IMG/VR virus record: IMGVR_UViG_3300035183_000733
Span: 1 to 64,000 of that record
Length of the DNA stretch: 64,000 nucleotides
Strand: one strand, 5' to 3'
Shown: one piece after another, positions 19,877-52,803 of the stretch
Numbering within the stretch: position 1 is the first letter of the stretch
Layout: each line of letters opens with the position of its first letter
Position numbers and translations under genes: made by a program
Notes under the pieces: model-generated
Seen by the model: the letters and a program-made list of their open reading frames with translations, nothing else
Databases searched by the model: none
Told to the model about the DNA's origin: nothing

Positions 19877-19951
19877 GTCTCGATAGTATAGCGGCAATTA
19901 TACAACGGTCTCTAAAACCGATAGACATGGGTTCGAATCCCATTCGAGGCA
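19877..19951 (+). tRNA. amber suppressor tRNA(CUA)
   Basis: GTCTCGA/TCGAGGC acceptor; CGGT-CT-CTA-AA-ACCG. Confidence 0.9.
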
Positions 19952-20017
19952 CTTTTTTATAGTTTGGTGTCACAGGGAAAAAGAAGCAGAATTAAGAAAT
20001 AAATTAAAACAAAAGCC

Positions 20018-20139: not shown

Positions 20140-20487
20140 ATGACAACAATGACAACAACAAAAGTTGAGGCAACGCCTCAGAACATCAATGACGCCGTAG
20201 TGCGCATAGCAGAGTACGCCAAAGCAAAGGGGTACCAATTCAACGAATCGGAAGTGCCCTTCCGCGAGCAGAACATCGCGTTCTGGCAGGGCAGGAAATA
20301 CAGGTTCCTGCACTACCTCTGGAGACACGTGATGAAGATGGACGGTCAGTCGCCAAGGGTGGAGTACTCGGAGAGAGAACAGAAGATCAAGGCCGCGCGA
20401 AAGGCCTGGAAGGCCGCTCAGGCGGAGGCGGAGAAGCTCCAGAAGGAGTACAAGGAGATTAAAGGGGACTTCTACAAGTCCAAGTAA
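20140..20487 (+). CDS. hypothetical protein, basic helical C-terminus
   Basis: ORF followed by terminator hairpin ~20490-20514. Confidence 0.75.
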   Translation: MTTMTTTKVEATPQNINDAVVRIAEYAKAKGYQFNESEVPFREQNIAFWQGRKYRFLHYLWRHVMKMDGQSPRVEYSEREQKIKAARKAWKAAQAEAEKLQKEYKEIKGDFYKSK

Positions 20488-24105: not shown

Positions 24106-24241
24106 GGGGAAGTAGCCAAACGGTAAAGGCACAAGTCTGTTAAAACTTGCAACACGTACAAAACCATAACGTTACTCTACTTTCTATTGAAAGAACTAAA
24201 TGTTATTTCAGTATCTGGAGGTTCGAATCCTTCCTTCCCCA
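24106..24241 (+). ncRNA. Tyr-like tRNA scaffold with TTCAGTA module in the variable arm
   Basis: GGGGAAG/CTTCCCC acceptor, T arm, 8-nt anticodon loop CTGTTAAA, ~60-nt insert. Confidence 0.75.
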
Positions 24242-24530: not shown

Positions 24531-24725
24531 TTGGAAGTAACTCTTCCACAAGCAAAGAGAGAAACTTGGCGAGTTTTCAGTAAAATTAGCTCAACTGGAA
24601 GAGCGTTTGCCTACTAAGCAGAATGTTGCGGGTTCGACTTCCGTATTTTATACCTAACAATTCGCTTCCATATCTCTCCCACACTGCCGATTAAACGGCA
24701 CAGGAGACTAAGTGCACCTTCAGTA
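24531..24725 (+). ncRNA. Arg-like tRNA scaffold (anticodon ACT, 24580-24652) flanked by two TTCAGTA modules
   Basis: cloverleaf GTAAAAT/ATTTTAT; TTTGC-CT-ACT-AA-GCAGA; modules end at 24582 and 24725. Confidence 0.7.
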
Positions 24726-28381: not shown

Positions 28382-30214
28382 ATGATCGCCGATAATGATA
28401 ATACGCAGATGGAAGAGCAACGCGATGTTGCCGAGGGCGAACAGACCAGGACGGAGGCTGTTGACAACGTGAGGCGACAGCTCGAGGAAATGGTAATGTA
28501 TGAGCCCATAACCGCCACCAACGTTGCGGCGGCGATAGAACTGGCCAGGATTAGCGGCAGCGATACATCCGAACTACGCGCCTTACAAACAACATCATCG
28601 GCAACCTCCGAGTGGGTCTCTATGGAATCGTACGGGGGCGGATACGAATCCGGCCTCGACGATTGGAACAACATTGGCACCGCGGAACCGCAGCCGGTGC
28701 GAGAGGATACCGAGGAGGAGAAAGCGGCCAAGTTCGCCGAGCGGCTCCGACTCGCCGAGGAACTGAAGATTAAAGTATTAAAAACAAAATCGAGGAAAAT
28801 GTCAAGAACACGCACCGTAATACTGGAAGAGATAGCCACCAGCGTCATCAACAACGTAGACAGCGCGCTTGCATCCATAACCGAGCAATCGACCCACGAA
28901 AATTTCGTGAGCTACTTGAGCTACTTGTCCGAGTATATGGACCGGTGCGACACGCACATAGATAACCAGATAAGCAAGGAACAGCTGAAGAAGAAGAAGC
29001 TTGCCGAGTCTATGCTTAGGAATAAGCCGGACATGCGGTCGAAACTGTTCTGTCCGATGGGGATAGAGTACACGTACCATCCAAAGATCAGAAGACCAAA
29101 AATAAAAGAATCTGCTATAAGCGAGAATTCCAGACTAAACAACATAGCCTACGCGGGCGGTAATATAAAGTTCAGGACCTACACAATGACTTTGGATTTA
29201 GATGGATCTCCAAGATTTACTCCTAATCAAATAGAATCCACGGAACAGACCACACCAGAGAACACGGAACGTCAAGAAATACCTGATGACTTATTGTCTG
29301 CGAAGCTTGCTACAGAGGATCCAGTCGCGGAGGAACAACCACAGGAGCCAGAGCCGGTGGCACCTAACCCCAATTACGAGCCATCTGTATTCTCCCGCGG
29401 GAATAGACGAGATACATTGGACAAAATAGTGACGAGGATATTGACGAGGATAAATGAAGTCAAGCGGGCCACCGGTCTCTATCCGGAGGCAAGGGTATAC
29501 GCGGACAACGGCGTCGTAGAGGTGTGCTCTCCGGTGCACCGAGACTGGAAGTCCATGCGAGAATGGTACAGGTGGATGGTGAACGAGCTCGGCTCCTCTG
29601 TGACTGTCATAAACAAGAAGAAGGGTAGCGGTGGCGGACACATCAACTGCGCCATGCCAAAAAAACTGAAGGAGAAGTTCATGTACAACCTGCTCGTGGA
29701 CATCGGCAACAGGCCGTACCTCAACTGGATATTCAATGACCCGAGCGATAACCACACAGCCAACTGCATGTGGGACTCTAAGGATATGCAGCGCATCTAC
29801 GAGCACGTACACAAAAACAAAGAGAAGTGGGACGCCGACGACAGCGACTTCATAAGTACCTTGGGCGAACTGATAACTCTCACCAACTCAAGAGGCTTCG
29901 CCATCAGAGTGAAATCTGAATACCACTTCGAGTTCAGGTGTTTCGACGCCATAAGAAACGAGCGGGACCTCGAGGACATTGTCATATTCGTTAGTGAGTA
30001 CATGCGCAGCATATACTCCATGACAGTAGCGGGTAACATGTTTGACAGCATCGGTGGGACCACGGATGACCTCCCGAATTTTGCGGCCACTGCCCGGACA
30101 GATTTCAACAGGCTGCTGCGGAAAATTGGGCTCGATCCGGAAAATTACCGCAGGTTCATCGACCGCAATTTCGAGGTTCGGCGGAAAGTTTATGGAAAAA
30201 ATAACCTCATTTGA
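28382..30214 (+). CDS. putative amidoligase (COOH-NH2 ligase) with acidic N-terminal extension
   Basis: VEVCSPV, GGGHIN, FEFRCFD; alternative start at ATG ~28800. Confidence 0.55.
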   Translation: MIADNDNTQMEEQRDVAEGEQTRTEAVDNVRRQLEEMVMYEPITATNVAAAIELARISGSDTSELRALQTTSSATSEWVSMESYGGGYESGLDDWNNIGTAEPQPVREDTEEEKAAKFAERLRLAEELKIKVLKTKSRKMSRTRTVILEEIATSVINNVDSALASITEQSTHENFVSYLSYLSEYMDRCDTHIDNQISKEQLKKKKLAESMLRNKPDMRSKLFCPMGIEYTYHPKIRRPKIKESAISENSRLNNIAYAGGNIKFRTYTMTLDLDGSPRFTPNQIESTEQTTPENTERQEIPDDLLSAKLATEDPVAEEQPQEPEPVAPNPNYEPSVFSRGNRRDTLDKIVTRILTRINEVKRATGLYPEARVYADNGVVEVCSPVHRDWKSMREWYRWMVNELGSSVTVINKKKGSGGGHINCAMPKKLKEKFMYNLLVDIGNRPYLNWIFNDPSDNHTANCMWDSKDMQRIYEHVHKNKEKWDADDSDFISTLGELITLTNSRGFAIRVKSEYHFEFRCFDAIRNERDLEDIVIFVSEYMRSIYSMTVAGNMFDSIGGTTDDLPNFAATARTDFNRLLRKIGLDPENYRRFIDRNFEVRRKVYGKNNLI

Positions 30215-30258
30215 GGGAAAAATTTTCACAATTATGTTCACGATTCAAAAAAAGCTCG

Positions 30259-30266
30259 TACATTTG
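30259..30266 (+). promoter_or_regulatory. Bacteroidota housekeeping promoter -7 element TAnnTTTG
   Basis: TACATTTG; also ~17791, 31869, 42081, 46514, 51892. Confidence 0.65.
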
Positions 30267-30298
30267 TATCGTTAAATAATAAACAAAGTTCAGAAACT

Positions 30299-30475
30299 AT
30301 GGCAAAAACAGCTAAAAAGTCGACAGCAAAAAAAGCTAAGGCTACTAAAAAAGCAAAGCCTGCGGCTAAGAAAGCTGCGGTAAAGAAAACTGCTAAACCT
30401 GCGAAGAAGAGCACGCCGAAGGCGAAGGCTACTCCGAAGGCTGAGCCAGCGAAGAAGGAAACTTCACCTCGCTAA
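30299..30475 (+). CDS. 58-aa histone H1-like Lys/Ala/Pro-rich protein
   Basis: MAKTAKKSTAKKAKATKKAKPAAKKAAVKKTAKPAKK...; below ORF-track cutoff. Confidence 0.75.
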   Translation: MAKTAKKSTAKKAKATKKAKPAAKKAAVKKTAKPAKKSTPKAKATPKAEPAKKETSPR

Positions 30476-30650
30476 GCTCAAAAAGGTTGTGTGACGTCGC
30501 TGAGGGAACCCAGTGGACACAGAGGATTATCGTTCCATTCCAGATTGACCATCCTCAAGCAACACTCTCCTGAAAACTGGCGTACGCCCGGAGCAATCCG
30601 GGCCGCGGCCAAGCTGAGTCTCTTAGCCCCCTAAGGCTCAGCGGAACATT

Positions 30651-30777
30651 TGTCGAGTACAACTGGAGGTCAAGCGCTGATCAAAGGTGGTCCTGACGGG
30701 AAGCAGCAGTCTAATTAACTGCTGGAGCCCGATCAAACTCAGCAAAGGAAGTGCGGGTTCGAATCCCGCCTCGACGG
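30651..30777 (+). ncRNA. enlarged tRNA-like RNA (127 nt)
   Basis: TGTCGAG/CTCGACG acceptor, GCGGG-TTCGAAT-CCCGC T arm, multi-hairpin interior. Confidence 0.6.
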
Positions 30778-30958
30778 CAGTGCAAGAACTACGGTGAACA
30801 TGGGTTCGTCCCTCCGCCGTAGTTTTTAAAAATGAATTAAAAACCGAAACAATTCGGGATATATAGAGTATAAAGATAAGATTGTTCTACCTTATTCCCA
30901 ACAAATGGCAGATATACAAACAGGGACTTGCCAGGTAAAATAGTCGAACTAAAAAGAC

Positions 30959-31045
30959 ATGAAGAAGTATAACGCATATCAGCAGTATAATCAAAATCAG
31001 AATCAAAGTTCTGGGCTGAGCGTTATTTCCCCATTTGAAAAGTAG
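30959..31045 (+). CDS. attenuator leader peptide (Tyr/Asn/Gln-rich, 28 aa)
   Basis: MKKYNAYQQYNQNQNQSSGLSVISPFEK*. Confidence 0.85.
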   Translation: MKKYNAYQQYNQNQNQSSGLSVISPFEK

Positions 31046-31065
31046 TAACACACTATACAACGCGT

Positions 31066-31097
31066 AAAAGGCCCAGGACAAAATCCTGGGTCTTTTT
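31066..31097 (+). terminator. attenuator terminator of the Asn/Tyr/Gln tRNA operon
   Basis: GGCCCAGGA-CAAAA-TCCTGGGTC-TTTTT. Confidence 0.85.
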
Positions 31098-31101
31098 ACT
31101 T

Positions 31102-31190
31102 GGGTGGATTACCGTAGAGGCCGAACGGTCCAGACTGTTAATCTGGTGTGACGACGAGTCCCATCGCAGGTTCGAATCCTGCTCCGCCCG
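31102..31190 (+). tRNA. tRNA-Asn(GTT), long variable arm
   Basis: CCAGA-CT-GTT-AA-TCTGG, G73. Confidence 0.9.
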
Positions 31191-31226
31191 CAAAAATAGG
31201 TCCGACACGGGTAGATAGTAAATTAT

Positions 31227-31300
31227 GGACATGTAGCTCAGCAGGTCAGAGCAGCTCACTGTTAATGAGAAGGCCGGGGGTTCGAATCCCTCCTTGTCCG
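31227..31300 (+). tRNA. tRNA-Asn(GTT)
   Basis: cloverleaf. Confidence 0.95.
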
Positions 31301-31305
31301 CAAAT

Positions 31306-31380
31306 TTCTTGGGTGAGTCGGCTGTTTATTACGCGCGCAGCTGACGGTTGGAAGAAGAGGTTCGAGTCCTCCCTAAGGAG
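31306..31380 (+). ncRNA. D-armless tRNA-like element
   Basis: TTCTTGG/CTAAGGA, GAGG-TTCGAGT-CCTC, single GTCGGCTG/CAGCTGAC arm. Confidence 0.4.
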
Positions 31381-31390
31381 CAACAAATAT

Positions 31391-31480
31391 GGGTGTACGG
31401 TCGCGACGGTGGAGCGACCCCAGTCTGTAAAACTGGGACATTTAAAGAAACGCCGGGGGTTCGAAATCCCTCTACACCCA
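31391..31480 (+). tRNA. tRNA-Tyr(GTA)
   Basis: CCAGT-CT-GTA-AA-ACTGG; 8-nt T loop. Confidence 0.85.
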
Positions 31481-31485
31481 CACAT

Positions 31486-31567
31486 TGAGGAGCGCTAACG
31501 TTGGAGAGTTAGACCAGTCTGTAAAACTGGTGCTTCGGCTGAGTGGGTTCGAATCCCATCTCCTCAA
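31486..31567 (+). tRNA. tRNA-Tyr(GTA)
   Basis: cloverleaf with class II arm. Confidence 0.9.
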
Positions 31568-31574
31568 CTTAAAT

Positions 31575-31658
31575 TGTCCGATCGCCTAATGGCATGGCGC
31601 CGGGTTTTGGCCCCGGTGGGAAGTAATTCCTGTGTAGGTTCGACCCCTGCTCGGACAA
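31575..31658 (+). tRNA. tRNA-Gln(TTG), long variable arm
   Basis: CCGGG-TT-TTG-GC-CCCGG; GGGAA-GTAA-TTCCT arm. Confidence 0.9.
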
Positions 31659-31776
31659 CAAGACATCGACAGAGGTACTCGTCCGCAGACGTGTGGAAAA
31701 GTGTGTGCTTGCGACCATTAAAGTCTCTGTGTATCCCAATAGGTAGGAAGTAATTACTCTGAATGATTGGGAATAC

Positions 31777-31849
31777 TGTCCTGTAGTGTAACTGGCAACA
31801 CGTCGGGTTTTGGCCCCGAAGATTCCAGGTTCGAACCCTGGTGGGACAA
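31777..31849 (+). tRNA. tRNA-Gln(TTG)
   Basis: cloverleaf. Confidence 0.95.
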
Positions 31850-31887
31850 CAAAACGAAATTTATTTCGTATCTTTGAAGTATTATAT

Positions 31888-31960
31888 TGTCCTGTAGTTC
31901 AACTGGCAGAGCGCCTGATTCTGGATCAGGATGTTGGAGGTTCGAACCCTCCCGGGACAA
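31888..31960 (+). tRNA. tRNA-Gln(CTG)
   Basis: CCTGA-TT-CTG-GA-TCAGG. Confidence 0.95.
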
Positions 31961-32045
31961 CATGGGAATTAAGAACAACAATTAGTAGATAGATGCTGTA
32001 ATCCTAAATACACACAAAAGACTGGTGGCGGATATATTTGGAAAT

Positions 32046-33587
32046 ATGAGCATAATAACTAAAAAAGATTCGGGGAGGGTACGCGTACGTTTCGCGCCCT
32101 CCCCTACGGGACCCCTGCACTTAGGAGGGATCAGGACCGCATTATACAACTACCTGTTTGCTAAGAAGCACGGCGGCGATTTCATACTTCGCATCGAAGA
32201 TACCGATGCGATGAGGTTCGTGCCAGGCGCCGAAGAGTATATCATCGAAGCGCTGAAGTGGTGCGGTATATCGCCCAACGAAGGCGTTGGATTTGGCGAT
32301 GGTCCGCATGCACCATACAGGCAGTCGGAGAGAAAATCCATTTACAAGGAATACGCTATTAAGCTCGTGGAGCTCGGCCATGCATACTATGCGTTTGATA
32401 CTGGGGTATCGCTCGAAGAGAGACGCGCTGTCAACAAGAATTTTATGTATAACGGGGTGACTCGCGAGTCGCTGAGAAATAGTTTGACGTTGTCTTCTGA
32501 TGAGGTGAAATCGCTATTAGACTCGGAGACGCCGTACGTTATTCGGTTTAAGATACCGCGCAACACCGAGGTCGTGGTTAACGACATAGTTCGTGGTGCA
32601 ATAAGGGTCAACACGAACACGCTCGACGACAAGGTATTGTTCAAGAGTGACGGCATGCCTACTTACCACCTGGCGAACATTGTGGATGACCATCTCATGG
32701 GGATCACCCATGTAATCCGAGGTGAGGAGTGGTTGCCGTCTGCCCCGCTGCACGTTCTTTTGTACGAGGCTCTCGAGTGGGACGCCCCAGAGTTCTGCCA
32801 CCTTGCGTTGATACTTGGGCCTAACGGCAAGATGAGCAAGCGCGACATGGATTCTCTCGGGTTCCCAGTGTACCCGCTTGATTGGACAGATCCCAACACG
32901 GGGGAAAAGGCATCCGGATACCGTGAGATGGGATTCCTACCGGAAGCGTTCATCAACATGCTTGCGTTCATCGGATGGAACCCCGGCAACGGCAAGGAGA
33001 TAATGGGTCTCGACGAGATGGCAGAGGTGTTCGACCTCAGGAAGGTTCAGAGAGCTGGTGCCAAGTTCGACCCAAAGAAGGCGGAGTGGTACAGCAAGGA
33101 GTACATGAGGGTCGCTGACGACGCCGTGCTCGTCGAGAAGTGGATACCGGATCTGTGGGATAACGTTGATAAAAGCATTCCGCTTTCTCGCGTTTCTTCC
33201 GAGTACCGCACGAAGGTCGTCCACTTACTGAAGGAGAAGGTGGCATATCTCGGAAAGTTTTGGGAGAACGGCAGTTACTTCTTTATTGATCCAACCGATA
33301 TGTCGGTGCTCGATGAGTTGGCCGCGTCTAATGATAAGGTAACTCCGTTTATATTAAGCATGATGTCTAAGCTGATCGCCGATGATGTATTCGATATGAC
33401 TACCACTAAGGCTTGCTTTGATTCTGCCATAGCAGAATCCGGCATTGAGCCGCGCGAGGCCGGTAAGGCATTGCGTGCTGCAGTTTGCGGCAACAAAGTG
33501 GGGCCGCCGATGTTCGACATATTGGTGGTGCTCGGAAAGAACACCACGTTGTCTCGTCTTAAGAACTGCGCAACTGCACGAAGCTAA
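32046..33587 (+). CDS. gltX: glutamyl-tRNA synthetase
   Basis: RFAPSPTGPLHLGG, LRIEDTD, HVIRGEEW, KMSKR. Confidence 0.95.
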   Translation: MSIITKKDSGRVRVRFAPSPTGPLHLGGIRTALYNYLFAKKHGGDFILRIEDTDAMRFVPGAEEYIIEALKWCGISPNEGVGFGDGPHAPYRQSERKSIYKEYAIKLVELGHAYYAFDTGVSLEERRAVNKNFMYNGVTRESLRNSLTLSSDEVKSLLDSETPYVIRFKIPRNTEVVVNDIVRGAIRVNTNTLDDKVLFKSDGMPTYHLANIVDDHLMGITHVIRGEEWLPSAPLHVLLYEALEWDAPEFCHLALILGPNGKMSKRDMDSLGFPVYPLDWTDPNTGEKASGYREMGFLPEAFINMLAFIGWNPGNGKEIMGLDEMAEVFDLRKVQRAGAKFDPKKAEWYSKEYMRVADDAVLVEKWIPDLWDNVDKSIPLSRVSSEYRTKVVHLLKEKVAYLGKFWENGSYFFIDPTDMSVLDELAASNDKVTPFILSMMSKLIADDVFDMTTTKACFDSAIAESGIEPREAGKALRAAVCGNKVGPPMFDILVVLGKNTTLSRLKNCATARS

Positions 33588-52237: not shown

Positions 52238-52318
52238 ATGAAGCAAATGATTAACATAGTTCGAATTAGCAGAAGGCGCTCAGACGTCCTGTCCGGATTA
52301 TGTCCAATCGTAAGCTGA
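52238..52318 (+). CDS. attenuator leader peptide (Ile/Arg, 26 aa)
   Basis: MKQMINIVRISRRRSDVLSGLCPIVS*. Confidence 0.85.
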   Translation: MKQMINIVRISRRRSDVLSGLCPIVS

Positions 52319-52344
52319 TAACATCGCTTTTCTTTTGGGACAAG

Positions 52345-52373
52345 AAACCCGGACCTAATCGTCCGGGTTTTTT
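52345..52373 (+). terminator. attenuator terminator of the Ile/Arg tRNA operon
   Basis: AAACCCGGAC-CTAATC-GTCCGGGTTT-TTT. Confidence 0.85.
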
Positions 52374-52382
52374 ATTTTACAC

Positions 52383-52456
52383 TGGTGTGTGACCAAGCTG
52401 GTTAAGGCACCTCCCTGATACGGAGGAAATCGTGGGTTCGACTCCCACCGCACCAA
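52383..52456 (+). tRNA. tRNA-Ile(GAT)
   Basis: CCTCC-CT-GAT-AC-GGAGG. Confidence 0.9.
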
Positions 52457-52461
52457 CAAAT

Positions 52462-52514
52462 AGTCGCTTAGCTCAGTTGGTTGGTCCCCAGTTCGAGTCT
52501 GGAAGCGACTACCA
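52462..52514 (+). ncRNA. 53-nt tRNA lacking the anticodon arm, CCA end
   Basis: AGTCGCT/AGCGACT-ACCA; GCTCAGTTGGTT joined directly to GGTC-T arm. Confidence 0.55.
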
Positions 52515-52580
52515 AGCCAGTCAATATGCGGGATGGCTTGCATTGTTACCGGACATTAAACCACCCGGGCGTTAGAGAAT

Positions 52581-52654
52581 GCACGCGTAGATCAACTGGA
52601 TAGATCACCTGACTACGGATCAGGAGGCTGGGGGTTCGAATCCTTTCGCGTGTA
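52581..52654 (+). tRNA. tRNA-Arg(ACG)
   Basis: cloverleaf. Confidence 0.95.
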
Positions 52655-52716
52655 CAAAATGCCTCAGTAGTCCCGTCGGCTTCGGAACCGATAGGGCAGA
52701 ATATGAATTAAGATAC

Positions 52717-52789
52717 GGTCCCGTAGCTCAGCGGATAGAGCATTTGCCTTCTAAGCAAAGGGTCACTGGTTCGAATCCAGTCGGGATCA
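52717..52789 (+). tRNA. tRNA-Arg(TCT)
   Basis: TTTGC-CT-TCT-AA-GCAAA. Confidence 0.95.
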
Positions 52790-52803
52790 CAAAAAGTAAA
52801 GTT

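Follow-up and report, generated by a model that had tools for sequence, protein, structure and literature searches.

The window analyzed here, a 64-kb stretch (64,000 nucleotides) of the virus record IMGVR_UViG_3300035183_000733, belongs to a huge phage and contains a group of seven tRNA genes preceded by an intrinsic terminator and, upstream of the terminator, by a short open reading frame (ORF) rich in Tyr, Asn, and Gln codons. We call this arrangement unit A1, and its features and those of the genes behind it are as follows:

30858-30882, plus strand: promoter-like motif GATATATAGAGTATAAAGATAAG, the candidate transcription start region of A1 (function inferred)
30905-30943, plus strand: small upstream ORF MADIQTGTCQVK in the 5' untranslated region, conserved in close relatives
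30959-31045, plus strand: leader ORF, 28 codons plus TAG, translation MKKYNAYQQYNQNQNQSSGLSVISPFEK
30968-31006 (codons 4-16), plus strand: regulatory codon run YNAYQQYNQNQNQ
30979-31003, plus strand: region 1, the regulatory codons that pair with region 2 in minimum-energy folds
31008-31019, plus strand: region 2, inside the leader ORF, whose partner is region 1 or the terminator 5' arm (antiterminator)
31066-31097, plus strand: intrinsic terminator (5' arm 31066-31078, loop 31079-31083, 3' arm 31084-31092, U-run 31093-31097)
31102-31191, plus strand: tRNA-Asn (GTT), 90 nt with an unusually long variable region (ARAGORN; Rfam 42.3 bits)
31227-31301, plus strand: tRNA-Asn (GTT) (ARAGORN and Rfam)
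31391-31481, plus strand: tRNA-Tyr (GTA) (ARAGORN only; nearest Rfam model tRNA-Sec at 35.4 bits, threshold 47)
31486-31568, plus strand: tRNA-Tyr (GTA) (ARAGORN only; nearest Rfam model tRNA-Sec at 33.6 bits, threshold 47)
31575-31659, plus strand: tRNA-Gln (TTG), 85 nt with a long variable region (ARAGORN and Rfam)
31777-31850, plus strand: tRNA-Gln (TTG) (ARAGORN and Rfam)
31888-31961, plus strand: tRNA-Gln (CTG) (ARAGORN and Rfam)
32046-33587, plus strand: glutamyl-tRNA synthetase (GluRS) gene, directly 3' of the tRNA-Gln genes (Pfam PF00749, 1.3e-90)

The leader ORF runs from the ATG at 30959 to the TAG at 31043-31045, and a TAA lies immediately 3' of the TAG. The first-pass annotation, made from sequence alone, had claimed that 12 of the 13 codons at positions 4 to 16 specify Tyr, Asn, or Gln (Y/N/Q), that CAG and CAA are both used in accordance with CTG and TTG tRNAs, and that the tRNA set downstream is Asn x2, Tyr x2, Gln x3. 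All three claims held when checked by translation of the ORF, by codon counts and a wobble check, and by ARAGORN, with Rfam confirming the Asn and Gln genes; the Tyr pair (all seven genes span 31102-31961) is absent from the Rfam matches at gathering thresholds. The Gln codons of the run are three CAG and two CAA, and under conservative wobble rules each of the 12 Y/N/Q codons can be read by one of the downstream anticodons GTT, GTA, TTG, and CTG. No other stop-free stretch of 13 codons in any of the six frames of the window has more than 9 such codons, and in 200 first-order Markov simulations of 64-kb sequences the peak was likewise 9 per 13 codons, with 12 never reached.

Behind the tRNA-Gln genes, the phage GluRS has its nearest cellular relatives in Bacteroidia and Flavobacteriales (~56% identity). 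Its gene has its own TATATTTG box at 32033-32040, and a scan for hairpins followed by T-runs found no terminator between the last tRNA-Gln gene and GluRS (31961 to 32046). It is possible that GluRS is reached by read-through from A1, though it has its own box.

The promoter-like motif belongs to a class, GATATATA(N)ATATAA, related forms of which are found upstream of all four leaders of the window (see below) and of several ordinary genes; allowing up to three mismatches, we found 19 matches where 3.2 were expected. The A1 copy is unchanged in the relatives L002 and L004 and is also present in L014. The small upstream ORF MADIQTGTCQVK is kept in the close relatives L002 and L004, in L013 the ATG frame of its counterpart is broken by an early stop, and it is missing from the distant relative L014, where the promoter-like motif lies ~35 nt from the leader ATG. 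A Shine-Dalgarno sequence is absent before the A1 leader, which has an A-rich upstream region as do the phage's other genes, and no Shine-Dalgarno enrichment was found across the genes of the phage as a whole. The transcription start and the initiation of the leader without a Shine-Dalgarno sequence are inferred and remain assumptions. A conserved RNA of 350 nt upstream was considered as a candidate tmRNA and was rejected, as it was called by neither ARAGORN nor Rfam at normal thresholds.

The core of the A1 terminator, GGCCCAGGA, loop CAAAA, and TCCTGGGTC, occupies 31070-31092 and is followed by TTTTT. Its stem has nine GC-rich pairs and up to four A-U pairs, is predicted to continue into the U-run (~31094-31096), and has a free energy of about -17 to -20 kcal/mol. 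A consensus terminator scan missed this hairpin, whose stem extends into the A/U tracts, while the hairpin and T-run scan detected it together with three further terminators that belong to the sister units described below. The plus strand of the window has about 14 terminator-like hairpins, four of which lie within 40 nt upstream of a tRNA gene, and all four of these come after a leader that matches the tRNAs. In A1 the U-run ends 4 nt and the stem 7 nt before the first tRNA gene. There is thus no room for a separate promoter, and transcription of the tRNA genes must cross the terminator.

We examined which structures could compete with this terminator. Region 1 pairs with region 2 through 30979-30983 with 31015-31019 and 30997-31003 with 31008-31014 (1:2 pairing). 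The first-pass annotation had also claimed that 31009-31017 pairs with the terminator arm at 31070-31078, and folds of cut transcripts upheld this: TTCTGGGCT at 31009-31017 forms nine base pairs, including two G-U pairs, with the terminator 5' arm (2:3 pairing). The energy of this duplex, -14.7 kcal/mol, was equalled by 12 of 2000 shuffles, and the 1:2 pairing, at about -9 kcal/mol, is weaker. The full-length leader always folded to the terminator (3:4 pairing), even with a stalled ribosome, although the advantage of the terminator state fell from 6.8-8.0 kcal/mol (without a ribosome or with one at the stop codon) to 2.6 kcal/mol with a stalled ribosome. Since equilibrium folding of this kind cannot show antitermination, we used transcripts cut before the terminator 3' arm, and in these the 2:3 pairing was predicted for 12 of the 13 positions at which the ribosome was placed as stalled. 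The alternative pairings are thereby shown in silico; termination itself and the polarity of the switch are inferred.

Two features of A1 speak against the attenuator reading. First, in the cut transcripts of A1 and of its sister A2, the 2:3 pairing still forms without a ribosome, so that in the absence of translation the polymerase may read through and not terminate. Second, a caveat already raised in the first-pass annotation, that the pairing segment lies about 26 nt upstream of the stop, held: region 2 ends 25 nt before the stop codon, and a ribosome at the stop codon leaves it uncovered by ~11 nt, unlike in A2 and A3, where such a ribosome would cover region 2. If A1 terminates under replete conditions, it would then have to do so through the 1:2 hairpin, which is conserved but weaker than the 2:3 pairing, through steric hindrance, or through the two combined. 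The first of these features bears on a rival model of reversed polarity, in which efficient translation of the leader leads to read-through and stalling to termination, giving positive feedback. In its favor, the polarity is only inferred, and the antiterminators of A1 and A2 form without a ribosome in cut transcripts. Against it, region 2 lies within the ORF downstream of the regulatory codons, where a moving ribosome would melt or block the antiterminator and a stalled one would expose it. Moreover, 22 nt separate the stop codon from the terminator stem, too far for the ribosome to melt the terminator itself. We consider reversed polarity very unlikely and retain the model in which stalling leads to read-through.

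The window has four leader-terminator-tRNA units, namely A1 and three sisters:

42666-42803, plus strand: sister unit A2 (leader MKKMINIVLVFPVFVSFSGSGRVLR 42666-42743, region 2 42721-42735, terminator 42773-42803)
46558-46683, plus strand: sister unit A3 (leader MKNLIHIHHIWQLSQGPAVYSV 46558-46626, terminator 46655-46683)
52238-52373, plus strand: sister unit A4 (leader MKQMINIVRISRRRSDVLSGLCPIVS 52238-52318, terminator 52342-52373)

The A2 leader has the core VLVFPVFV and precedes tRNA genes for Phe, Pro, Val, and Val (42813-43458); the core of A3, HIHHIW, precedes Trp (46691) and two His genes (47316-47489); and that of A4, INIVRISRRR, precedes Ile, Arg, and Arg (52383-52790). When the four leaders were scored against the four tRNA sets, the true assignment was the best of all permutations (24.2 versus 16.5 for the next best), showing that each leader corresponds to its own tRNAs, although the correspondence in some sister units is, for several codons, one of amino acid only and not of strict wobble. 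The 2:3 duplex of A2 is strong (-20.4 kcal/mol, equalled by 1 of 2000 shuffles), the complementarity is modest in A4 (74 of 2000 shuffles as good), and it is weak in A3 (223 of 2000). With a stalled ribosome, a segment toward the 3' end of the leader ORF pairs with the terminator 5' arm in all four units of the window, and in 10 of 11 units when those of other phages are included. Not every tRNA gene of the window is arranged in this way: those for Cys, Leu, Met, and Ser and two suppressors have no leader, and no matching small ORF was found at Cys/suppressor 19744, at the tRNAs 24106 and 24580, at Leu/suppressor 42100, or at Met 48673.

We then compared A1 with its counterparts in related phages. 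Homologues of the A1 leader, of 25 to 28 codons and with translation inferred, occur in L002, L013, L004, L014, and L016; examples are MKKYNAYQQYNQNQRNPGLSVITQS (L004), MTKMNNNQQNYYQNQERFPGLLVITPC (L014), and MKKSNNIQYNQNQYQSTGLHVYYPNQR (L016). What these relatives share is the N/Q/Y composition, region 2 (CTGGGCTG), and a terminator, while the order of residues and the C terminus vary. In an alignment of six sequences, the 3:4 terminator helix had 92% of cells paired compared with 12-73% when slid, the 2:3 helix 93% compared with 23-57%, and the 1:2 helix 87% compared with 26-50%, with three pairs of the latter changed on both sides. The base for covariation is limited to these six sequences, three of which are nearly identical. 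The pattern of conservation, in which composition, region 2, the terminator, and the helices 1:2, 2:3, and 3:4 are kept, is the signature of an attenuator.

All four units of the window recur in a distant relative, where the leader order is reshuffled and the matching composition is kept. The content of tRNA genes and the content of the leaders vary together: where the Phe/Pro/Val leader of the window has one Pro codon and is followed by one tRNA-Pro gene, that of a relative has three Pro codons and three tRNA-Pro genes. On contig SRR12266081_64755 the true assignment of leaders to tRNA sets was again the best of all permutations (31.4 versus 19.6). Back-translated leader patterns run against IMG/VR returned only the window's own contig and chance matches, and a blastn comparison of the region with 50,697 phage records gave similarity in the tRNA and GluRS genes only and no similar leader. 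The relatives found through the conserved ARPP-1 protein in JGI metagenomes and IMG/VR (55 loci, ~50% identity) were uninformative, with no units and only one or two tRNAs near the gene. In the GluRS relatives L003, L005, and L006, the upstream region or synteny was missing.

The same design is present in two other phages. In Cellulophaga phage phi4:1, which is in culture, 22 tRNAs are divided among three leaders, each unit has a terminator and a region 2, the U-runs behind the three small ORFs lie at about 87,180, 88,160, and 89,915 of the phage record, and the true assignment of leaders to tRNA sets is the best of all permutations (16.9 versus 8.6); two units were found in the 642-kb phage LR756502.1. 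The units are:

phi4:1: leader QRLHLQELEQP, before Pro, Glu, Gln, His, Leu, Leu, Arg
phi4:1: leader TKTGITVIDKTKGARA, before Ala, Lys, Ile, Gly, Met, Asp, Thr, Val, Arg, Met
phi4:1: leader YNNSNWSFSY, before Tyr, Ser, Asn, Trp, Phe
LR756502.1: leader SSRSRSSKS, before Arg, Ser, Arg
LR756502.1: leader ISVGVIAIGAG, before Ile(TAT), Gly

In the last of these, the Ile-ATA codons of the leader match the tRNA-Ile(TAT). All 11 units examined have a terminator with a GC-rich stem of 9-15 bp followed by 5-6 U. The phages phi4:1 and LR756502.1 represent two unrelated lineages and are independent examples of the design. The phages that carry it all have known or predicted Bacteroidota hosts. In the stretches examined of Aeromonas phage AS-zj, Bacillus phage SDFMU_Pbc, and Erwinia phage pEp_SNUABM_01, no terminator-like hairpin lies within 45 nt upstream of any tRNA, a sample of three phages that is too small to prove absence outside Bacteroidota.

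These comparisons address two further rivals. According to the first, A1 is a coincidence: an ordinary small gene encodes a Q/N/Y-rich peptide and has its own terminator, and the tRNAs are made by leaky, unregulated read-through. The codon run is indeed low-complexity DNA (CAA/AAT/CAG-type repeats), and nothing shows that the ORF is translated. However, the run is unique in the window, three sister leaders of quite different composition each match their own tRNAs, relatives conserve composition and not sequence, and the pattern recurs in two unrelated phage lineages, so that coincidence is strongly disfavored. The second accepts a translated ORF in which stalling has an effect, but not on the choice of terminator: stalling might alter how the precursor is processed, how stable it is, or whether Rho can reach it, and the hairpin would serve in processing or stability. 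Precursors of tRNAs are heavily processed, the first tRNA begins only 4-7 nt after the U-run, and the hairpin is always favored in equilibrium folding. Against this, the stem and U-run form a canonical intrinsic terminator in 11 of 11 units, and each unit has its own complementary region 2 in the ORF, which only a terminator/antiterminator switch would require; we regard this rival as very unlikely.

Taken together, these results support the claim of the first-pass annotation that A1 is a leader-peptide attenuator: the elements are all present and in the right order, while regulation and its polarity are inferred. The interpretation is strengthened most by the sister units, by the conservation in a distant relative, and by the examples in phi4:1 and LR756502.1. 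We conclude, on computational grounds only and without experimental data, that A1 is likely a ribosome-mediated transcription attenuator that gates a phage tRNA operon.

We hypothesize that transcription begins upstream, probably at the GATATATA-type motif at 30858, and that the 28-codon leader would be translated while RNA polymerase advances. With charged Asn, Tyr, and Gln tRNAs in ample supply, the ribosome would pass the Y/N/Q codons and region 2 to reach the stop codon; behind it, region 2 would re-pair with region 1 and may also be kept sterically from region 3, the 3:4 hairpin and U-run would form, and transcription would stop 4 nt before tRNA-Asn. When any of these tRNAs is scarce, the ribosome would stall on codons 4-16 and cover region 1, and the freed region 2 (31008-31019) would pair with the terminator 5' arm (31068-31078) ahead of synthesis of the 3' arm. 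The polymerase would then read into the genes for Asn x2, Tyr x2, and Gln x3, and possibly GluRS. The predicted outcome is negative feedback, in which the phage makes tRNAs on demand.

The physiological signal is inferred, and a last rival keeps the same architecture and changes the signal: the leader would report amino-acid starvation or a general slowdown of translation and not a shortage of tRNA molecules, and the tRNA operon would be one more stress-induced gene set. A stalled ribosome cannot distinguish a missing from an uncharged tRNA, several sister units match the amino acid and not the exact codon of the downstream anticodon, and a GluRS gene lies behind the tRNA-Gln genes. But extra tRNA would bring no relief from amino-acid starvation, and the feedback would therefore be futile; the exact partition of tRNAs among leaders and the match of Ile-ATA codons with tRNA-Ile(TAT) in LR756502.1 point instead to tRNA-specific feedback. 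We therefore think this alternative unlikely and favor a tRNA-specific signal.

Classical attenuators include trpL, hisL, pheL, and leuL, and the multi-amino-acid leaders thrL and ilvL. The classical systems, in which leader-peptide attenuation has been modelled (PMC1183508), have the same parts as A1: regulatory codons clustered in a short ORF, 1:2, 2:3, and 3:4 pairings that exclude one another, and, before the regulated genes, an intrinsic terminator. Their signal is ribosome speed, as inferred for A1, and in thrL and ilvL one leader senses several amino acids, as the A1 leader would. They regulate enzymes, whereas A1 would regulate tRNA genes, so that feedback would act through tRNA supply. 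A1 is also phage-borne, has no sequence similarity to them, and differs in that its region 2 is inside the ORF and is not covered by a ribosome at the stop codon. To our knowledge, no described attenuator has targets other than amino-acid biosynthesis enzymes, transporters, or synthetases. In E. coli, pheM-pheST exemplifies leader-peptide control of aminoacyl-tRNA synthetase genes. A His leader precedes hisS/hisZ paralogues in bacilli (PMC2965389), and an ileS leader is reported in Actinobacteria (PMC1262725). These leaders sense the availability of charged tRNA, as A1 is inferred to do, and what they control belongs to the translation apparatus and not to biosynthesis; in the window, too, a synthetase gene, GluRS, lies behind the tRNA-Gln genes. 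But they regulate the charging enzyme, whereas A1 would regulate the tRNA itself, and several species together. T-box riboswitches also use an antiterminator to couple terminator read-through to the state of one particular tRNA, but they bind uncharged tRNA directly via a specifier codon, without translation, and mostly in Firmicutes, whereas A1 would need a translating ribosome. At gathering thresholds, Rfam found only tRNAs over the whole window, with no leader family and no T-box (RF00230), and at E<=1 over 30200-32050 the non-tRNA rows were all sub-threshold (Plastid-psbl-rps4, sX4, and a 13-nt tmRNA fragment), again without a leader or T-box family. The novelty of A1 is thus its target, the seven tRNA genes directly downstream, and not its mechanism, and we found no report of leader-peptide attenuation of tRNA genes in the literature searched (full text).

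The purpose of phage tRNA genes has been debated for ~50 years, with codon compensation and counter-defence against tRNA-cleaving immunity both proposed (PMC10264068). Retron-Eco7 degrades tRNA-Tyr (PMC12673091) and Septu cleaves it (PMC13096335), which gives a reason to replace tRNAs such as Tyr and Asn during infection. These studies address the function of the tRNAs, and their abstracts do not contain a cis-acting sensor that sets expression by demand, as proposed for A1. The regulation of phage tRNA genes is largely unknown. A bolder reading, toward which we lean only slightly, is that A1 exemplifies a general, so far unrecognized circuit in Bacteroidota phages, in which every tRNA operon is headed by a leader spelling the amino acids of its tRNAs. 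The phage would sense shortage codon by codon, whether caused by its own heavy translation, by host shut-off, or by tRNA-cleaving host defences, and would transcribe exactly those replacements. Such a circuit would be both a demand-driven counter-defence and a sensor of translation homeostasis, and the first leader-peptide attenuation of RNA genes.

The idea is testable now because Cellulophaga phage phi4:1 and its host, Cellulophaga baltica, are in culture. The leader-terminator cassettes, being short and modular, could also find use in sensing tRNA availability. The leaders also provide a built-in annotation, indicating which tRNAs share a transcription unit and hinting at the amino acid likely served by odd or undetected tRNA-like genes. 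If the interpretation is true, some phages gauge the supply of tRNA directly and replenish it as needed. A mechanism known from textbooks for enzyme genes and the sensing of amino acids would then also apply to RNA genes and the sensing of tRNA, and phage tRNAs would be linked to tRNA-cleaving defences.

The leader ORF of the Asn/Tyr/Gln unit (A1; 30959-31045) translates to MKKYNAYQQYNQNQNQSSGLSVISPFEK and ends in a TAG stop codon with a TAA immediately 3'. At codons 4 to 16, the regulatory codons, 12 of 13 positions are Tyr, Asn, or Gln and both Gln codons are present, confirming what the first-pass annotation had claimed. The next-best stop-free 13-codon stretches in the six frames of the window contain at most nine such codons, and nine was also the highest count in 200 Markov simulations of the window. 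All 12 of these codons can be read by the downstream anticodons (GTT, GTA, TTG, and CTG). The terminator (31066-31097) is a GC-rich hairpin of nine pairs plus an A-U extension, with a CAAAA loop, a run of five U residues, and a ΔG of about -17 to -20 kcal/mol. The first tRNA-Asn gene begins at 31102, 7 nt past the terminator stem, and the cluster (Asn, Asn, Tyr, Tyr, Gln, Gln, Gln) ends at 31961.

In the minimum-energy fold, region 1 (30979-31003), within the regulatory codons, pairs with region 2 (31008-31019), a segment inside the leader ORF. The alternative partner of region 2 is region 3, the 5' arm of the terminator, which forms the terminator with region 4, the 3' arm. The pairing of 31009-31017 with 31070-31078, proposed earlier from the sequence alone, was confirmed (nine pairs); when the 3' segment of the leader was shuffled 2000 times, only 12 shuffles reached its duplex energy of -14.7 kcal/mol. 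The 2:3 helix (the antiterminator) was predicted for transcripts truncated ahead of region 4 whenever the A site of the ribosome occupied one of the first 12 regulatory codons. Equilibrium folding of the full-length leader preferred the terminator in every case, so antitermination must be kinetic; the advantage of the terminator was 6.8 to 8.0 kcal/mol with no ribosome or a ribosome at the stop codon and 2.6 kcal/mol with a stalled ribosome.

Termination in the replete state, where the antiterminator would have to be avoided during fast translation, is the weakest link of the A1 model. A ribosome at the stop codon (footprint about 31028-31058) leaves region 2 exposed, and termination must therefore depend on the 1:2 hairpin forming behind the ribosome. 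The first-pass caveat that the pairing segment lies upstream of the stop was borne out, as 25 nt separate the end of the segment from the stop codon. Conceivably, though this is only inferred, the ribosome sterically blocks the pairing of segments 11 nt behind and 12 nt ahead of it. The ribosome should be unable to melt the terminator, whose stem begins 22 nt beyond the stop codon; from this and the location of region 2 inside the ORF, 3' of the regulatory codons, the polarity of the switch is inferred.

Scanning small ORFs upstream of every tRNA in the window revealed three sister units.

Sister leader ORFs in the window and the tRNAs downstream
42666-42743, A2 leader MKKMINIVLVFPVFVSFSGSGRVLR; Phe, Pro, Val, Val
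46558-46626, A3 leader MKNLIHIHHIWQLSQGPAVYSV; Trp, then His, His
52238-52318, A4 leader MKQMINIVRISRRRSDVLSGLCPIVS; Ile, Arg, Arg

In each sister unit, a strong hairpin with a U-run comes after the leader and ends 7 to 9 nt before the first tRNA; the ORF also contains a region 2 of its own, complementary to the terminator arm of the same unit. About 14 plus-strand terminator-like hairpins occur in the window, and the four with a tRNA no more than 40 nt downstream are exactly those of the leader-bearing units. When leaders were scored against tRNA sets, the diagonal values were 9.9, 5.1, 4.9, and 4.4 and no off-diagonal value exceeded 1.6, the true assignment ranking best of 24. A GATATATA-type motif, a possible phage promoter, is found upstream of all four leaders and of several ordinary genes (19 matches versus 3.2 expected).

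The sole Leu codon of the A2 leader (42690-42692) is CTC, readable by the phage tRNA-Leu(GAG) encoded at 42100-42184, upstream of the leader and not part of the unit. In the distant relative L014, the corresponding leader has no Leu codon, and no tRNA-Leu was among the ARAGORN calls for L017 5000-20420, which includes the corresponding position.

Three close relatives from Logan assemblies (L002, L013, and L004), whose glutamyl-tRNA synthetase (GluRS) is 77 to 79% identical to that of the window, have the same leader and terminator and an enlarged tRNA cluster (three Asn, three Tyr, and two to four tRNA-Gln in the recovered stretches). The L004 leader retains its N-terminal part as well as region 2, with the C terminus altered after an in-frame 3-nt deletion. 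Two genomes are more distant. In one of them, L016, the leader MKKSNNIQYNQNQYQSTGLHVYYPNQR and a terminator of different sequence precede Asn, Tyr, Gln, and Gln, with a 78-codon ORF (assembly annotation) separating the terminator from the first tRNA. All four units are present in the other and most distant relative, contig SRR12266081_64755, whose neighbouring protein of 610 aa shows only 34% identity.

Leaders of SRR12266081_64755 and the tRNAs downstream
MTKMNNNQQNYYQNQERFPGLLVITPC; Asn x3, Tyr x3, Gln x3
MKNYTNIPVFFPVVVPFGTGRVMYFDDF; Phe x2, Pro x3, Val x3
MKNLIHIHHQIWHSKESSVLYSV; Trp x2, His x2
MNTMVNINRIIRRRRISTSRPGIALTIG; Ile, Arg, Arg

Among the relatives, residue order in the leaders shifts while composition, region 2, and terminator are maintained, as would be expected under selection on the codons and RNA pairing and not under selection on a peptide. 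Leader Pro codons and tRNA-Pro genes number one and one in the window and three and three in SRR12266081_64755. In a six-sequence alignment of the A1 unit, helices 3:4, 2:3, and 1:2 were 92%, 93%, and 87% paired, compared with 12 to 73% in controls with the partners slid by 1 to 3 columns, and three, one, and three pairs, respectively, had changed on both sides. Statistical power is limited since three of the six sequences are nearly identical.

The Asn/Tyr/Gln clusters of L002, L004, L013, L014, and L016 are broken up by inserted small genes, among them Pyr_excise, PDDEXK_5, HNH, and 2OG-Fe(II) oxygenase genes; several of the insertions resemble homing endonuclease genes. Copy number also varies, with three Asn and three Tyr genes in relatives versus two of each in the window.

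A tRNA match pointed to Cellulophaga phage phi4:1 (KC821632.1), a flavobacterium phage in culture, in which terminators made of a hairpin and U-run divide the block of 22 tRNAs into three units. Units were also identified in LR756502.1, a 642-kb uncultured phage.

Leaders in other phages and the tRNAs downstream
phi4:1, unannotated ORF MKIQRLHLQELEQPIISGGTGV; Pro, Glu, Gln, His, Leu-TAG, Leu-TAA, Arg
phi4:1, ORF annotated gp075, core TKTGITVIDKTKGARA; Ala, Lys, Ile, Gly, Met, Asp, Thr, Val, Arg, Met
phi4:1, leader MKTNYCTYNNSNWSFSYDTG...; Tyr, Ser, Asn, Trp, Phe
LR756502.1, leader SSRSRSSKS; Arg, Ser, Arg
LR756502.1, leader ISVGVIAIGAG with ATA codons; Ile(TAT), Gly

In the MKIQRLHLQELEQPIISGGTGV ORF, codons 4 to 14 are readable 11 of 11 by the next seven tRNAs, with both CTA and TTA present, and the true leader-tRNA assignment in phi4:1 was the best among all permutations. 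LR756502.1 has two further, weaker candidate units. The leader-terminator-tRNA feature is real and recurs in at least three phage lineages. No terminator directly upstream of any tRNA was found in the stretches examined of three phages with Aeromonas, Bacillus, and Erwinia hosts; the phage genomes above 634 kb in the study of LR756502.1 were predicted to infect Bacteroidetes (PMC7162821). In this small sample, every phage found so far to carry the device has a known or predicted Bacteroidota host. LR756502.1 also contains a tiny ORF, MKTKRKYKR, ahead of three tRNA-Lys genes (stretch L021, 4396-4665). The hairpin that comes after this ORF lacks a U-run; the ORF could be a minimal Lys leader of another design, or chance.

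The window covers the initial 64 kb of a 373,759-bp IMG/VR contig (IMGVR_UViG_3300035183_000733) of a huge phage. It contains 23 tRNA genes, two of them amber suppressors, and genes for GluRS, a UvrD-like helicase, and AAA ATPases. The GluRS is nearest to Bacteroidia and Flavobacteriales enzymes (about 56% identity), and no Shine-Dalgarno enrichment was found upstream of the phage genes (an SD-like core in 10% of genes versus 19% of random positions); both fit a Bacteroidota host.

Unusual tRNA calls in the window
19877-19952 and 42187-42258, tRNAs with anticodon CTA (amber suppressors), labelled Pyl by ARAGORN
24580-24654, tRNA-Ser with anticodon ACT (ARAGORN)
24106-24241, 136-nt Rfam tRNA match without an ARAGORN call

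Neither CTA-anticodon tRNA stands behind a leader. The two suggest that TAG is perhaps decoded as an amino acid during part of the infection cycle; the TAG stop of the A1 leader has the adjacent TAA as a backup. The Ser identity is doubtful because homologues are called Asp (ATC in L013, GTC in L014), and the 136-nt match may be a tRNA carrying an insertion or intron.

Several further elements lie in or next to the units.

Further elements
30299-30475, plus strand, Lys/Ala-rich 58-aa ORF MAKTAKKSTAKKAKATKKAK..., histone H1-like or HU-like in composition
30484-30830, plus strand, non-coding GC-rich stretch (about 350 nt) separating a gene for a small Lys/Ala-rich protein from the candidate promoter of the attenuator
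31301-31391, conserved spacer element (about 80 nt) between the Asn and Tyr genes, with T-arm-like GAGGTTCGAGTCCTC
32046-33587, phage GluRS gene directly after the tRNA-Gln genes
31102-31191, 31575-31659, 43088-43174, and 47316-47401, tRNA copies of 85 to 91 nt with a long variable region
L019 14972-15058, 15398-15484, and about 20285-20368, long-variable-region copies in the relative

The 30299-30475 ORF is present in all relatives (61-74 aa). The 30484-30830 stretch is 85 to 87% conserved in L002, L004, and L013 and has a folding z-score of -2.6; its 5' and 3' ends pair beside a T-arm-like GCGGGTTCGAATCCCGC, with its own hairpin and U-run at the end. By analogy, this layout resembles the tRNA-like domain of tmRNA; neither ARAGORN nor Rfam called a tmRNA there, and the only tmRNA match was 13 nt long (E=0.29). 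The 31301-31391 spacer (73-87% identity in L002, L004, and L013) was not recognised as a tRNA. Relatives have a GatB/YqeY-domain gene 3' of GluRS (L002 11554-12426; L014 16331-17140) that is absent from the window; together with the position of GluRS after tRNA-Gln, this hints that the phage takes part in the indirect route to Glu-tRNA(Gln). TATATTTG at 32033-32040 fits TAnnTTTG, the -7 promoter box of Bacteroidota.

The long copies belong to tRNAs that normally have a short variable region (Asn, Gln, Val, and His; also Trp and His in the relative, which has in addition a long Ile(GAT)-like gene missed by ARAGORN). Each adjoins a normal 73- to 77-nt copy, and the long Asn copy is kept in all relatives. 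Since some defences cleave the tRNA variable loop (PMC13096335), the long copies are conceivable as decoys or nuclease-resistant variants.

The attenuator interpretation offered by the first-pass annotation is supported, its observation being confirmed in full: A1 shows, in silico, five defining features of the leader-peptide attenuator class and is likely a functional attenuator of its tRNA operon, its response to tRNA shortage being inferred. We propose that attenuation is mediated by the ribosome and that the supply of tRNAs closes a negative feedback loop, in which slow decoding of the listed codons would stall the ribosome, allow the antiterminator to form, and lead to transcription of exactly those tRNAs, while fast decoding would give termination. 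Amino-acid starvation would trigger the switch too because a stalled ribosome cannot tell a missing tRNA from an uncharged one.

Mechanistically, A1-type units fall into one class with the leaders of trp, his, phe, thr, and ilv, but the targets of A1-type units are RNA genes, several tRNA species at once, their carriers are phages, and their sequences are unrelated. No Rfam leader family or T-box matched the A1 element. Its nearest functional relatives are the leader peptides ahead of the synthetase genes pheST and hisS (PMC2965389) and T-boxes; an ileS leader is also known as a case of synthetase-gene control (see PMC1262725). We found no description of leader-peptide control of tRNA genes in the literature searched, and an earlier report cannot be excluded because most subscription journals lie outside that search. 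The novelty lies in the inferred control of tRNA genes by a known attenuation mechanism. For the phage, the benefit, also inferred, may be a tRNA output matched to demand or a means of making good the tRNAs that host shut-off or tRNA-cleaving defences remove (PMC10264068, PMC12673091, PMC13096335).
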